From positions 1-64,000 of the IMG/VR virus record IMGVR_UViG_3300028558_000016: DNA of 64,000 nt; one strand, written 5' to 3'. Positions 497-38,972 of the stretch are shown piece after piece. A model generated the notes under the pieces. The model ran no database searches, was not told where the DNA came from, and saw nothing but the letters and a program-made list of their open reading frames with translations. The position numbers and the translations under genes are program-made. Each line of letters opens with the position of its first letter. Position 1 is the first letter of the stretch.

Positions 497-1039
497 TTAA
501 TAATTTTTTAGCTTATGAATATCTTCAGGTCCGTTTAGCACAACCCAATCTCTGTCCTTAAACACAAAATGAATTGTAAGCTTTATGTCAGGCCTCTTCG
601 TCCACAGCTCAGTGAAATTCTCAATGTGTTCGATCATGTCATCAAAGAATTCTATCTCCTTAACGTCAGGATAATGCTCATCGATTATTCTTATCGCTCG
701 GTCAACCTTCTTTTTCCCGTCATACTTCAATGAATGGTGATGGAAATAAAGCTTGTTCTTCTCGAGTATTGGCATGATGTTTGGCTTTAGCCTATACATC
801 CTGTTTGTCAACACAACCTTTGCTGCAGTGTAATCCTCAGTTGCACGCATGTAATGAGGAAGTATACACTCCAACGGTTTAATGTTGAATTCAGGCATGA
901 GGCTTTCCCATCTACCCCACCAACCATTATGAGGATATGGAACACCTTTAATCCTCTCGTATTCCTTCTTCCCTTCATCGGGAAGAGGAACATCGAGAAG
1001 AGTGCCGTCCATGTCAAATATGTAAAGTTTTGTTATCAT
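497..1039 (-). CDS. HAD-family phosphatase, Swiss Army Knife RNA-repair-like HAD
   Basis: N-terminal FDMDGT motif, GWWG segment, C-terminal FFDD motif; adjacent to an RNA ligase. Confidence 0.75.
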   Translation of the reverse strand: MITKLYIFDMDGTLLDVPLPDEGKKEYERIKGVPYPHNGWWGRWESLMPEFNIKPLECILPHYMRATEDYTAAKVVLTNRMYRLKPNIMPILEKNKLYFHHHSLKYDGKKKVDRAIRIIDEHYPDVKEIEFFDDMIEHIENFTELWTKRPDIKLTIHFVFKDRDWVVLNGPEDIHKLKNY

Positions 1040-5547: not shown

Positions 5548-5548
5548 G

Positions 5549-5634
5549 TGCAGTAGGTGAGATTCGAACTCACAACCCCCTGATTGGAAGTCAGGTGCTC
5601 TATGCTTTCGCGTCCAATTAGGAGCTACTACTGC
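5549..5634 (-). tRNA. Atypical tRNA with TCC (Gly) anticodon, enlarged D-loop, Lys/Arg-like body
   Basis: GCAGTAG/CTACTGC acceptor with A73, 21-nt D-loop containing GC-GAAA-GC, anticodon arm CCTGA-CTTCCAA-TCAGG. Confidence 0.8.
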
Positions 5635-5773: not shown

Positions 5774-5778
5774 ATGTG

Positions 5779-5869
5779 CGGGGAAGATTGGAATCGAACC
5801 AATTAGTTTGATTTGCAGAAGACATTCTTTTTAAACAGAATGGTGCTCAGCCACCCGAGCATCTTCCCC
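5779..5869 (-). tRNA. Aberrant tRNA (Cys GCA-like remnant) with inserted hairpin; possible pseudo-tRNA
   Basis: GGGGAAG/CTTCCCC acceptor, GCTC/GAGC D-stem, ATTGG-TTCGATT-CCAAT T-arm. The central region has a CATTCT/AGAATG hairpin followed by CT-GCA-AA-TCAAA-CTA. Confidence 0.6.
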
Positions 5870-6592: not shown

Positions 6593-6645
6593 ATTTGTTG
6601 ATGATACACAACATTATATACCGACTGTATAAAAATGTTTTAATG

Positions 6646-6718
6646 TGACCCCGGTGGGGATCGAACCCACAACCACCTGATTAAGAGTCAGGAGCTCCAC
6701 CAATTGAGCTACAGAGTC
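6646..6718 (-). tRNA. tRNA-Lys(CTT)
   Basis: GACTCTG/CGGGGTC acceptor, CCTGA-CTCTTAA-TCAGG. Confidence 0.95.
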
Positions 6719-6748
6719 ATTTTGTTGATGCAATACGTCAAAGATCGT

Positions 6749-6973
6749 TCATTTCATGAAAAGATGTTTAATTCTTTCCATATCTACTTCAATAGTTTTA
6801 ATGTTCAACTTCTCTCCAGTCTTTTTAAAATGATCATACCAAAGTCTAACCTTTTCAGATTTTATTATCTGACCATTATAATTTTTCCTTTTCAACCATT
6901 CCTTTCCAAAATATAAAATTCGTTTTTCTGTTATTCTCGAATTCATTATATGTTTAAAAACTTTTTCAATCAT
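6749..6973 (-). CDS. Hypothetical protein within the tRNA array
   Basis: 74 aa ORF fitting exactly between two tRNAs. Confidence 0.55.
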   Translation of the reverse strand: MIEKVFKHIMNSRITEKRILYFGKEWLKRKNYNGQIIKSEKVRLWYDHFKKTGEKLNIKTIEVDMERIKHLFMK

Positions 6974-6974
6974 G

Positions 6975-7059
6975 TAGCGCTGGTGAGACTCGAACTCACA
7001 CTACCGTTAAGGAACCCGCTTATGAGGCGGGCACAATTACCACATCTGTTCACAGCGCT
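6975..7059 (-). tRNA. tRNA with CAT anticodon on a class II (long variable arm) scaffold
   Basis: AGCGCTG/CAGCGCT, A73, CCCGC-CTCATAA-GCGGG, 15-nt variable region, GTGAG-TTCGAGT-CTCAC. Confidence 0.85.
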
Positions 7060-7101
7060 ATCTCGTCTGCTTCTTTGTAGGCCCCGTACTATATCTACAA
7101 A

Positions 7102-7371
7102 TCATTTGGTGGGGCTGTCGGAAACAGCAGACTTTACTTTATTTTCTTTCTTATACGTCTTCAAGAATTCCAAAGCATTTTGCAATTCTTCGACCCTGTT
7201 CTTGTTAGAAGGAATGCTTCCATTTGCCTGTCTAACAGTCATCGGATCCGATGACGATAAATTCTTTTCAAAGAACTCTAAATTTCTTTCTTCCATTAAG
7301 AGTCTTTCTCTTAATAATTTTGCCACGTATGGCATCGGATCATATTGTCCTCTTTCTTCTTGTGTCTTCAT
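7102..7371 (-). CDS. Hypothetical protein within the tRNA array
   Basis: 89 aa ORF starting 2 nt after the CCA of the upstream tRNA. Confidence 0.6.
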   Translation of the reverse strand: MKTQEERGQYDPMPYVAKLLRERLLMEERNLEFFEKNLSSSDPMTVRQANGSIPSNKNRVEELQNALEFLKTYKKENKVKSAVSDSPTK

Positions 7372-7372
7372 T

Positions 7373-7464
7373 TGGTGCGCCCGGAGGGATTCGAACCCCC
7401 GTTGGTGTTATTCACACGTCTGATTAAAAGTCAGGACCATTCGGCCAGCTATGGGAACGGACGC
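7373..7464 (-). tRNA. tRNA with TTT (Lys) anticodon and long variable arm
   Basis: GCGTCCG/CGGGCGC-A-CCA, CTGA-CTTTTAA-TCAG, V-arm GTGT-GAATA-ACAC, GGGGG-TTCGAAT-CCCTC. Confidence 0.85.
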
Positions 7465-7478
7465 ATTTGTTTTTATTG

Positions 7479-7552
7479 TGCGCCCGGTTGGGTTCGAACC
7501 AACGACCCCCTGATTAAAAGTCAGGTGCATCTACCAGCTGAGCTACGAGCGC
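7479..7552 (-). tRNA. tRNA-Lys(TTT)
   Basis: GCGCTCG/CGGGCGC, CCTGA-CTTTTAA-TCAGG; canonical. Confidence 0.95.
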
Positions 7553-7774
7553 AAATATTTGGATATGGAAATCCTCTTGCATCTCGTATTTCAGCGAGAT
7601 GCCTTTACCGTTTATATTTCATTTTAGTTTTCATTATCATTATATTTTTTAAAAGAACAGAATACGTTTTTTACCTTTTCATTAAAATTGAAATGCTCGT
7701 TAGAGCTTGTTTGTTTTGCTGTACGTATTCTTTTTTCTTTTTAATTTCTACCACCATTCAGGATGCTTTTGTTT

Positions 7775-7880
7775 TGGCAAAGATTGGATTCGAACCAATG
7801 ACCTCTCGTTTACTTTCCTTAACAATGTTTCCATTGACGGGGATTTCAGGCGAGCGCTCTACCAACTGAGCTACTTATCC
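7775..7880 (-). tRNA. tRNA-Phe(GAA) with a 33-nt insertion after position 37 (intron-like)
   Basis: Standard D- and T-arms. Anticodon arm CTCG-C-CT-GAA-A-[33 nt including CAATG-GAAA-CATTG]-A-A-CGAG; the acceptor stem has two mismatches. Confidence 0.7.
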
Positions 7881-7908
7881 TTTTGTAATGCTGCATGCAT
7901 CCTTTTTG

Positions 7909-7981
7909 AGCCGAGAACCGGGGTCGAACCGGTGACCTTCCGCTTACAAGGCGGGTGCTCTACCAACTGAGCTATCTCGGC
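7909..7981 (-). tRNA. tRNA-Thr(TGT)
   Basis: GCCGAGA/TCTCGGC, CCCGC-CTTGTAA-GCGGA. Confidence 0.95.
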
Positions 7982-7984
7982 AAT

Positions 7985-8119
7985 TTACAAATATTCGTTC
8001 TTGTTACACTCAAAAAACAAAACCCACAACTCGTGAATTCTCTCATTCACTTCATCATTTCCATTTTGTCTCTTGTTTAACAAAGACATCAATTCGTTTA
8101 CTATGTCATCCTTTTTCAT
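7985..8119 (-). CDS. 44-aa hypothetical protein between Thr tRNAs
   Basis: Manual translation MKKDDIVNELMSLLNKRQNGNDEVNERIHELWVLFFECNKNEYL*. Confidence 0.45.
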   Translation of the reverse strand: MKKDDIVNELMSLLNKRQNGNDEVNERIHELWVLFFECNKNEYL

Positions 8120-8122
8120 TTG

Positions 8123-8195
8123 AGCCTACAACCGGGATCGAACCGGTCACCTCATCCTTACCAAGGATGTGTTCTACCAACTGAACTATGTGGGC
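8123..8195 (-). tRNA. tRNA-Thr(GGT)
   Basis: GCCCACA/TGTAGGC, CATCC-TTGGTAA-GGATG. Confidence 0.95.
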
Positions 8196-8317
8196 AATGT
8201 CTCCGATCGTAAAAATAATCTCTCAAATATTATCAAGATCATTTCCATTCTTTATTAAGCGGTCGGACACGCTACTACTAAATCCAAAAGTTGCAACTTC
8301 TGAATTTTTCATCTTTG

Positions 8318-8413
8318 AAGCGGGAGTGAGATTCGAACTCACGTTCTCTTTCGAGTTGAGGCTTATGAGGCCCTGCTGGCGTTTTGCAACTTCCATCTCC
8401 AGTCGATCCCGCA
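8318..8413 (-). tRNA. Initiator-like tRNA(CAT) with expanded D-loop and a V-arm
   Basis: T1:T72 mismatch plus GCGGGA/TCCCGC, D-stem CTGG/CCAG with long loop, GGGC-CTCATAA-GCCT, V-arm CTC-GAAA-GAG. Confidence 0.75.
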
Positions 8414-8419
8414 ATGTGT

Positions 8420-8541
8420 GCCGCTTCCTGGACCCTATCACCAGGATTTTCTTTGGACTACAGAAGAGAGATTCGCCAATTTTTTTCCATAGAATTAAAC
8501 CATATACGGCGCTTTTCTACACTCTCAACTTTCGCAAGCGG
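8420..8541 (-). ncRNA. Candidate structured RNA (element F)
   Basis: Closing CCGCT/AGCGG; internal GAGAG/CTCTC, CGCCG/TGGCG and TCCTGG/CCAGGA stems. Confidence 0.4.
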
Positions 8542-8552
8542 ACTTTTATTTG

Positions 8553-8624
8553 TAGCGGGAGATGGATTCGAACCACCGACCTCAGGGTTATGAGCCCTGC
8601 GAGCTACCCCTGCTCTATCCCGCA
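8553..8624 (-). tRNA. tRNA-fMet(CAT)
   Basis: 1:72 mismatch, three consecutive G-C pairs in the anticodon stem (CAGGG-CTCATAA-CCCTG), A73. Confidence 0.95.
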
Positions 8625-36754: not shown

Positions 36755-37486
36755 TTATTTTATTGTGTTTGGATATTTCATTTTTAATCCTCTCATTGCC
36801 TCAACCAATTTCTTTGTTATCAAATAGTTTCTGTACCATTTATCATCGGCCGGAACTATATTCCATTTAACGTCGCACTTCTTGAATATTTTTTCGTACA
36901 CTTCCATATAATTGTCCCACTTCTTTGCTTCGGCCAAATCATTTGAATTGTACTTCCACTTCTTTTCGAGATTCGTAAATCTCTCTTTAAATCTCTCTTT
37001 CTGTTCACCCTTTGAAATGTGCAAATAAAATTTAAGAACTACCGTTCCGTTATCTTGCAACATATTTTCAAAGTCATTAATGTGATCATATCGTTTTTCA
37101 ATTTCCTTTTTGTCGAACAGCTTGTGCACAGTCGGAACTAAGATGTCTTCATAGTGAGAACGATTAAACATTCCAACTTGTCCTTTTGATGGAGTGTTCT
37201 GACTTATTCTCCACAGAAAACCTTTTGATGATTCAAACTCTGTTGGAGCTTTAAATGCATGAACATAACATGCCATAGGAAAAAGTCCTCTGTATAACGA
37301 GACGACACTTCCATCTTTTCCCGAAGCATCCATTCCTTGAAACACTATCAAGATTGAATGTTTTTCTTCTGCCCTCATTACCGTATGGAGTGCTCTTAAT
37401 TCATTTAGCAGCTCGTCGGTTTTTTTAAGAATATCTTTCTTAGAAAGATTCTTTGGTGCTTTTGTTGATAACTTAATTAGGTCCAT
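36755..37486 (-). CDS. ppk2: Polyphosphate kinase 2 family protein
   Basis: FQGMDASGKDG, FKAPT, FNRSHYEDILVP, KFYLHISK, VPADDKWYR. Confidence 0.93.
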   Translation of the reverse strand: MDLIKLSTKAPKNLSKKDILKKTDELLNELRALHTVMRAEEKHSILIVFQGMDASGKDGSVVSLYRGLFPMACYVHAFKAPTEFESSKGFLWRISQNTPSKGQVGMFNRSHYEDILVPTVHKLFDKKEIEKRYDHINDFENMLQDNGTVVLKFYLHISKGEQKERFKERFTNLEKKWKYNSNDLAEAKKWDNYMEVYEKIFKKCDVKWNIVPADDKWYRNYLITKKLVEAMRGLKMKYPNTIK

Positions 37487-37777: not shown

Positions 37778-37986
37778 TTGTCAAGTTTATATTTTTCGGT
37801 TAACCATCCTTTTAAAAACCACCCTGTAAAATATCCGCCAATTCCCGACATAATCCATCCGAGCCACATTGGATCTATTGGAGTTGCTATCACAAAAAGC
37901 GTAGCAATCAGAAATAGGAAAAACATATTTTTATATTGCCACTTCATTTTTTTAATTCGTTTGCAAATATTTGACGTTGAGCCCAA
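37765..37986 (-). CDS. Small membrane protein
   Basis: Hydrophobic ORF; start probably at MKWQY. Confidence 0.5.
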   Translation of the reverse strand: MGSTSNICKRIKKMKWQYKNMFFLFLIATLFVIATPIDPMWLGWIMSGIGGYFTGWFLKGWLTEKYKLDKWNR

Positions 37987-38972
37987 TGTCCATGTTTTAT
38001 CTCAAATCCTTTGCTAACGAACTTAGCAACTGATTTTCTGAATTCACCATAGGAAAATTCATCGGCAATCCTTATAACATATCCCTCACATTTATTTCCA
38101 TCAATCTCTGATTTAAACAATGTTTTTATTTTTTCTTCATCGAATATTCCTCTGTATAAAACTGGAACTGTATTAAGCCCAAGAAGCTCAGCATATTCTA
38201 AGGTCTCATCCCATGATAGACAAACATTCTTTTCGTTCCACATAGAAAACATGTAAAAATAACTTTCGAGATTCTTGTATGGAATTGTGTGTATTGCATA
38301 CATGTCCTCTCCACACAATCTCCATCCTTCAGGAATTTCATAAGCAATCTTTCCCCAAAGACCTTTCACCCATTTCTTAGATGGGTGAGAATTGTGTTCA
38401 AGAGATCTTGCGTGAATGTGATCTCTGTACATGGAAGTATTTTCCCCATCCAGCTTCACAGTCACAACAACTTCTTTTCCTTCAAAATGTTTTGTTGATT
38501 CTAATTTTCTGTCATCCTTGGTCATCTTCTCAGTCCATGGAAGATGCATTGTTCTCGGATATTTGACATACTTTGAAAACAGATCCAACACCTTTCCTTG
38601 CTCGAGAATCTTTTGGACTGACTCATCATAGAACAGTTCTCCTCTCACCCTTGTTCCATTCGGCATGATTAAATTTCCCCATTTGTCGTAGGTATAATCA
38701 TTGTCGTTGTACAGGTGTGATGGTAACACGACTTCCTTGATGCCCGTTGCCTCTCTGATTTCTTCGCAGGAAAGGGTGGTCTGTTCTGCCTCTATATGAT
38801 GCGTTTGACAAAGAGACGCACCGTTAGATAGGTAGTAACCTCCATCATCGAATAACCTTCTTTCAATTATGTGATGAGCATCTTTTGCTGGTTGTTTGCA
38901 TATAACACATTGATGGGAATCCCTTTTAAAGACTCCCTCTCTGAATTCATCTCGTGTTAATAGCTTTTCCAT
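37944..38972 (-). CDS. RNA ligase family protein with N-terminal HNH-like domain
   Basis: N-terminus CVIC..DAHHI..NGASLC..HH; C-terminus KYPRTMHLPW, KLDGEN, GEDMY, EGYVIR, AKFV. Confidence 0.8.
   Translation of the reverse strand: MEKLLTRDEFREGVFKRDSHQCVICKQPAKDAHHIIERRLFDDGGYYLSNGASLCQTHHIEAEQTTLSCEEIREATGIKEVVLPSHLYNDNDYTYDKWGNLIMPNGTRVRGELFYDESVQKILEQGKVLDLFSKYVKYPRTMHLPWTEKMTKDDRKLESTKHFEGKEVVVTVKLDGENTSMYRDHIHARSLEHNSHPSKKWVKGLWGKIAYEIPEGWRLCGEDMYAIHTIPYKNLESYFYMFSMWNEKNVCLSWDETLEYAELLGLNTVPVLYRGIFDEEKIKTLFKSEIDGNKCEGYVIRIADEFSYGEFRKSVAKFVSKGFEIKHGHWAQRQIFANELKK

Follow-up and report, generated by a model that had tools for sequence, protein, structure and literature searches.

The main finding of this study is that a giant soil phage carries, next to an ordinary tRNA-Lys(UUU) gene, a second gene with the same anticodon that is built on the long-extra-arm architecture normally reserved for leucine, serine, and tyrosine tRNAs, and that this design recurs in many phages, with extra-arm tRNA-Lys in the cultured phages XacN1, X1, and CcrBL9 and extra-arm tRNA-Asn in phiKZ and phi4:1. 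The gene lies at 7373-7464 on the minus strand of the window, i.e., the whole 64,000-nt stretch that was analyzed, which is the start of a 482,156-bp rhizosphere virus record rated complete by CheckV, with 36.8% G+C. Our best reading, to which we assign a probability of about 0.5, is that this is a working lysine tRNA of a phage-borne lineage, kept beside a canonical copy as a structurally different second Lys decoder, most likely because tRNA-Lys(UUU) is a favorite target of host tRNA-cutting defenses. The analysis itself establishes that the gene is real, that its structure is conserved and covaries, that it belongs to a family widespread in phages whose acceptor marks are isotype-specific, and that genes resembling RNA-repair functions lie next to the array, whereas charging with lysine and use in translation are inferred from sequence alone and the benefit in evading defense is speculative.

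The extra-arm gene and its surroundings

ARAGORN finds 11 tRNA genes on the minus strand between 5297 and 8624, including the 92-nt tRNA-Lys(ttt) at 7373-7464 and, 13 nt upstream in the direction of transcription (gap 7465-7477), a canonical 75-nt tRNA-Lys(ttt) at 7478-7552 that scores 60.9 bits with the general tRNA model of Rfam. Read 5' to 3', the long gene has a 7-bp acceptor stem with one G.U pair (7458-7464 and 7377-7383), a 3-nt connector UUC (7455-7457), a D-arm (7437-7454) with stem CCAU/AUGG and a 10-nt loop holding GG, and an anticodon arm (7419-7435) with stem CCUGA/UCAGA, a C27.A43 mismatch, and the loop CUUUUAA, in which the anticodon is at 7426-7428. These are followed by an 18-nt variable region, C + GUGU-GAAUA-ACAC + CAAC, a T-arm GGGGG-UUCGAAU-CCCUC (7384-7400), discriminator A73 (7376), and an encoded CCA (7373-7375). 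In the minimum free energy fold, the variable-arm hairpin occupies 7405-7417, with one unpaired nucleotide 5' of it (7418) and four 3' of it (7401-7404). The gene therefore has all the features of a general tRNA cloverleaf, including a 5-bp T-stem, U33, and a purine at 37, and those of a class II tRNA, i.e., a variable region longer than 10 nt that forms a helix. Nevertheless, Rfam RF00005 gives it only 28.0 bits (7377-7463), just under the gathering cut-off of 29 bits, because of the insertion. It shares with its canonical neighbor the acceptor 3' strand plus A73 and 16 nt of the anticodon arm, while its D-arm, variable region, and T-arm are different. It is not an assembly artifact, since near-identical DNA is present in several rhizosphere metagenomes and contigs from two other samples span the gene without a single difference (over 6698-8463 and 7117-7616, respectively). 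All 14 sequencing runs found to hold the sequence are DNA and none is RNA, so expression remains inferred.

The observation made in the original prediction is thus confirmed, including the exact letters of the V-arm, the TTT anticodon, and the position directly downstream of a normal tRNA-Lys(TTT), although the D region, described there as Leu/Ser/Tyr-like, is better described as bacterial-tRNA-Tyr-like. In E. coli tRNA-Tyr there is also one unpaired base before the arm and four after it, a UU-CC...GGCC..AA..GG D-arm, and A73. However, the connector here is 3 nt, the anticodon is UUU rather than GUA, and the tRNA-Tyr of this genome falls in another clade of our tree.

The surrounding array contains several other unusual genes. 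A canonical tRNA-Lys(CUU) at 6645-6718 (-) is its third Lys tRNA, and an 86-nt extra-arm tRNA-Met(CAU) lies at 6974-7059 (-; Rfam 46.5 bits). A 97-nt tRNA-like gene with anticodon CAU, extra arm CUC-GAAA-GAG, and an oversized D-loop at 8317-8413 (-) was called by neither ARAGORN nor Rfam but scores 31.2 bits with our family model (see below). It shares its acceptor stem, including a U1.U72 mismatch, with the neighboring 73-nt tRNA(CAU) at 8552-8624 (-), which has the three G-C pairs in the anticodon stem typical of an initiator, making this another long-plus-canonical pair. A 92-nt tRNA-like gene at 5778-5869 (-) has a 9-bp acceptor stem, a 4-bp T-stem, a 6-bp D-stem, and a 6-bp anticodon stem, and is therefore Sec-like. 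Its anticodon loop has 8 nt (GUUUAAAA), ARAGORN calls it Asn(gtt), Rfam tRNA-Sec gives 23.5 bits, below its cut-off, and the fold z-score is -5.0. An 87-nt tRNA-like gene with anticodon UCC at 5548-5634 (-) has a normal 5-nt variable loop but a 21-nt D-loop, and its anticodon stem is the same as that of the canonical tRNA-Lys. Finally, a 106-nt tRNA at 7775-7880 (-; Rfam 51.3 bits), which we read by eye as tRNA-Phe(GAA), has roughly 33 extra nt inside or after the anticodon loop, like an intron, and a 146-nt tRNA with a similar large insertion lies at 417828-417973 of the complete record.

Just downstream of the array, between 497 and 4080 (-), lies a group of genes that together look like an RNA-repair and ribosome-rescue neighborhood: an RF-1-domain protein (140 aa, ArfB-like), DUF4326, an RNase-H-like gene, a T4 Rnl1-family RNA ligase at 1066-2487 (-; PF09511, 52.6 bits) about 3 kb from the array, and next to it an ORF at 497-1039 (-) with a weak match to the HAD phosphatase domain of RNA-repair proteins (PF10307, 23.4 bits, below the cut-off of 25.6). 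A second RNA ligase gene (PF09414) at 37944-38972 (-) lies next to PPK2 (36755-37486), and the genome has at least four RNA ligase genes, several of them inside tRNA clusters. An 89-aa ORF at 7102-7371 (-), whose ATG starts one base after the CCA of the extra-arm tRNA, has no family match and may not be a gene. More generally, 7 of the 55 tRNAs called by ARAGORN in this genome are followed within 0-4 nt by an ATG opening an ORF of 70 aa or more (6971-6975 and 7369-7373 in the window, and at 324533, 393132, 393532, 422620, and 425062 of the complete record), which leaves no room for a ribosome-binding site, and tRNA processing might release leaderless mRNAs.

A recurrent family of extra-arm tRNAs

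The original prediction treated the gene as a single curiosity, but it belongs to a conserved and widespread phage-borne family of extra-arm Lys/Asn tRNAs and is one of at least eight extra-arm tRNAs in this genome with anticodons other than Leu, Ser, or Tyr. The complete record, which has 55 tRNAs by ARAGORN and 62 by Rfam, also has long-arm tRNAs for Glu (124757-124843), Asn (386605-386692), Gln (387507-387591), Trp (413915-413998), and His (414375-414464), in addition to the Met and CAU genes above, and most of these long-arm genes stand directly beside a canonical copy. Three further tRNA-like genes at 415936-416017, 417396-417476, and 418237-418326, with anticodons UAU, GAU, and UCU, look D-arm-less with an extra arm, since the anticodon arm follows the acceptor stem almost directly and a second hairpin sits before the T-arm; two of them have an encoded CCA. 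Three tRNAs with anticodon CUA (amber suppressors) lie at 358020-358092 (-), 368276-368349, and 374278-374351, with a weak class IIa synthetase-like match among them at 364984-365283.

Using pattern scans, blastn, and ARAGORN, we found related extra-arm Lys tRNAs in 36 loci (54 genes) and extra-arm Asn tRNAs in 20 loci, although these counts are biased because the sampling was seeded with Lys/Asn-type patterns. They come from viral contigs of 10-508 kb, from metagenome-assembled genome (MAG) contigs, where every hit lies inside dense arrays of up to 35 tRNAs in 8 kb, and from cultured phages. The Lys genes of all 36 loci are inside dense tRNA arrays, and a scan of a genome collection for an ordinary chromosomal occurrence found the motif only inside such arrays of MAG contigs. 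The cultured examples are Xanthomonas XacN1 and X1 and Caulobacter CcrBL9 and its relatives for Lys, and Pseudomonas phiKZ and Cellulophaga phi4:1 for Asn. They share the 7/5 cloverleaf with a 3-6-bp extra arm, the UUN connector, and the CCRU/AYGG D-stem, and several sit beside a canonical copy. XacN1 and X1 read CUU, whereas the window copy reads UUU with a GUGU/ACAC arm. The tRNA-Asn of phiKZ (PHIKZ_t02; NC_004629.1, annotated at 269557-269645 as 89 nt, 87 nt by ARAGORN) is class-II-like, with U1-A72, G73, an encoded CCA, and the arm GGC-GAAA-GCC, and is followed by an HNH endonuclease gene. These genes are listed in GenBank as plain tRNA-Lys or tRNA-Asn, or as tRNA-OTHER in phi4:1, and the XacN1 genome paper does not mention the arm. 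Full-text literature searches on long-arm tRNAs, tRNA arrays, XacN1, and phiKZ tRNA-Asn found no description of extra-arm Lys/Asn phage tRNAs, although their coverage of subscription journals was incomplete and a description there cannot be excluded.

The window copy is an intact, selected tRNA gene. In an alignment of 39 distinct Lys/Asn extra-arm tRNAs, 97.1% of cells form standard pairs, compared with 31-46% when the 3' partners are slid by one to three columns, and 20 of 25 pairs change on both sides. All helices covary, including the extra arm, which is paired in 96.6% of cells and in which all four pairs show compensatory change. Arm stems include GUGU/ACAC (window), AGC/GCU, GGC/GCC, GAC/GUC, GAGA/UCUC, and GGCGCG/CGCGCC. 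A covariance model built from 38 relatives, without the window copy, scores it at 85.6 bits (E 3.5e-23), while the canonical neighbor scores 48.1 and the tRNA-Tyr of the genome 43.9. These results contradict the possibility that the gene is a decaying duplicate of its neighbor with a chance insertion. Although the Rfam score below the cut-off, the C27.A43 mismatch, and the G.U pair in the acceptor stem might suggest decay, position 27:43 is unpaired in 6 of the 39 sequences, i.e., in five other relatives, and the gene is identical in independent samples. In a tree, extra-arm Lys, Asn, and Thr(UGU) tRNAs form their own clade apart from Tyr, Leu, and Ser, which argues against recent descent from tRNA-Tyr, but this tree of short sequences is noisy and their origin is left open.

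The gene also differs from irregular long-arm tRNAs described previously. The allo-tRNAs and 8/4 tRNA-Ser/His genes, some of them in phage tRNA clusters (Mukai et al., PMC5389517), likewise combine a long arm with non-Leu/Ser/Tyr anticodons, but allo-tRNAs have 8/4 or 9/3 acceptor/T branches, Sec-like D-arms, and serine marks (G73/U73), whereas this tRNA is 7/5 with A73; it is not an allo-tRNA and is not Sec-like. A long arm and an anticodon outside Leu/Ser/Tyr are also combined in noncanonical V-arm-containing tRNAs of eukaryotes (Hamashima et al. 2016, listed in PMC5389517). The nematode tRNAs of this kind are reportedly charged with leucine, which would make them missense decoders, while here the acceptor marks point to cognate charging.

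Predicted amino acid identity

Several lines of evidence point to lysine. First, U35, U36, and A73, the lysine determinants listed in PMC9976931, are all present, and extra-arm tRNAs carry the acceptor-end marks of the amino acid named by their anticodon rather than those of serine. Long Asn has G73 in 14 of 15 and U1-A72 in 11 of 15, long Trp has A1-U72 plus G73 in 3 of 3, long Thr has U73, and long Met has A73. Long Lys has A73 in the group of the window copy, but 17 of 29 distinct long Lys genes, from a second group found mainly in Alphaproteobacteria MAG arrays, have U73, a group that may track hosts with class I LysRS. Second, in arrays that cover all 20 amino acids, extra-arm forms are the only Lys tRNAs. 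This is the case in arrays of 32-35 tRNAs in 8 kb on three MAG contigs (L028, L032, and L036; contigs of 8-160 kb labeled Alphaproteobacteria or Rhizomicrobium, which may be phage, plasmid, or chromosome), in which all the Lys tRNAs are extra-arm forms with U73 and an encoded CCA. Moreover, 19 of the 36 loci hold no standard Lys tRNA in the stretch fetched. In CcrBL9, a whole-record pattern scan found three Lys-type anticodon loops, of which the extra-arm gene is the only one in the tRNA cluster; the same scan was too loose to be informative for phiKZ and XacN1. Because no LysRS of class I or class II was found in the genome, the tRNA most likely would accept lysine from the host LysRS, which reads the UUU anticodon and A73, and would then decode AAA/AAG as lysine.

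The three readings offered by the original prediction, i.e., a nuclease-resistant variant, a decoy for Lys-anticodon nucleases, or a missense tRNA, are only partly supported, although its argument that the V-arm is rare outside Leu, Ser, Tyr, and Sec in bacteria holds. A missense tRNA charged by TyrRS, LeuRS, or SerRS is disfavored and we consider it very unlikely. In its favor are the class II shape, A73, the Tyr-like layout of the arm and D-arm, and the fact that LeuRS ignores the anticodon. However, G73, the serine mark present in 21 of 26 tRNA-Ser genes of the same data set, is absent, and G34 of tyrosine tRNA is replaced by U. In addition, relatives keep isotype-specific acceptor marks and are the sole Lys tRNAs in complete arrays, where a missense decoder would mean proteome-wide loss of lysine. 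Some mischarging cannot be excluded, since U35, A73, and the arm fit part of the tyrosine identity set, and A73, the key leucine determinant in E. coli, occurs here together with the GG of the D-loop, although the geometry of the other leucine hinge elements (A15-U48 and A20a, with G18G19) cannot be judged from sequence. A decoy that is not used in translation is also disfavored and unlikely. While the gene keeps the exact anticodon loop and 3' stem sequence of the canonical copy, which is the part such nucleases cut, a decoy needs no acceptor-end identity marks, intact T-arm, or CCA, all of which are conserved, nor would it be the only Lys tRNA in complete arrays.

Similarly unlikely is that the arm is a handle for a phage factor, such as a phage synthetase, the CCA enzyme, or a repair ligase, forming a semi-private translation set. 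This would fit the several RNA ligases, the CCA-adding enzyme, and the synthetase genes of this genome, each beside the matching tRNA cluster (126571-127836, 388791-389843, 401453-402499, 321260-322261, 393998-394522, 414745-415110, and 415182-415913). These include an archaeal-type non-discriminating AspRS (NF003483, 415.9 bits), a Glu/Gln-type synthetase, MetRS-like and class IIa genes, and short HisRS-like (258 aa) and TrpRS-like (243 aa) ORFs next to the extra-arm His and Trp tRNAs. However, there is no LysRS in this genome, the only one checked for synthetase genes, and the sampled arrays with an extra-arm Lys or Asn tRNA also come from much smaller viral contigs. Furthermore, the small ORFs beside the extra-arm genes in the window, X1, and XacN1 have no family match and no evident similarity to each other by eye, and one small ORF (P0001) had no tblastn match in phages.

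Possible reasons for keeping the arm

Why the arm is kept is inferred rather than shown. tRNA-Lys(UUU) is repeatedly hit by defense nucleases, including PrrC, AriB of PARIS, which cuts E. coli tRNA-Lys(UUU), Thr(UGU), and Asn(GUU) (PMC12409363), and a bacterial Schlafen that cuts tRNA-Lys(UUU) best (PMC13056530). AriB also needs determinants distal to the anticodon loop, and a U16C change in the D-loop impaired cleavage (PMC12409363). In this view, a changed body (extra arm, 3-nt connector, and altered D-arm) would spoil recognition by nucleases that read more than the anticodon loop, which fits the neighboring RNA-repair-like genes and the clustering of extra-arm Lys, Asn, and Thr(UGU) tRNAs in our noisy tree. 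The tRNA-Lys(UUU) of phage T5, which like the extra-arm copy is a phage-borne second Lys(UUU) decoder in a tRNA array and has C16 in the D-loop, escapes AriB through anticodon-stem changes, U39A and A41C (PMC12409363). In contrast, both window copies keep the full AriB-type site UAAUCA (U36AAUC|A41), as in E. coli tRNA-Lys, so nucleases that read only the anticodon stem-loop would cut both, and any resistance would have to come from the tRNA body. Among phage Lys(UUU) genes in our sample, only 4 of 17 standard-length ones keep U39, while 17 of 25 extra-arm ones do (Fisher's exact test, p = 0.011, not corrected for relatedness), which fits two alternative routes of escape. Resistance of the window copy thus remains plausible but hypothetical.

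A serious rival, although we consider it the less likely one, is that this is a working lysine tRNA whose arm has nothing to do with defense, being instead a lineage trait kept for folding stability of fast-made, under-modified phage tRNAs or for processing of the polycistronic array. Consistent with this, extra-arm forms also exist for isotypes that are not known nuclease targets, including Glu, Gln, His, Trp, and Met, both window copies keep the same anticodon loop, and the tight packing of tRNAs and ATG-started ORFs in this genome makes processing constraints plausible. However, this does not explain why a canonical copy is so often kept beside the long one (21 of 54 long Lys genes have a standard Lys tRNA within 150 nt) or why Lys is multiplied to three or four structurally different copies in small arrays. 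A broader possibility, compatible with the evidence but in our view less likely than not, is that phage arrays carry a parallel set of correctly charged tRNAs (Lys, Asn, Thr, Met, Glu, Gln, His, Trp, and others) rebuilt on a long-arm body as structural camouflage against host tRNA-cutting immune nucleases.

These findings flag an annotation gap, since such genes fall just under the Rfam tRNA cut-off or are labeled tRNA-OTHER. If these tRNAs are charged with lysine or asparagine and used, the textbook rule that a long variable arm in bacterial translation means Leu, Ser, Tyr, or Sec would be broken. LysRS and the Asn-charging enzymes (AsnRS or non-discriminating AspRS) would tolerate a bulky arm on the side they approach, and EF-Tu and the ribosome would accept such bodies as well. 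This would provide natural, evolved scaffolds for engineering orthogonal or tagged tRNAs. For phage biology, it would add a second route of escape from tRNA-targeting immunity, by changing the body rather than the anticodon stem, and would help explain why phage arrays multiply Lys tRNAs.
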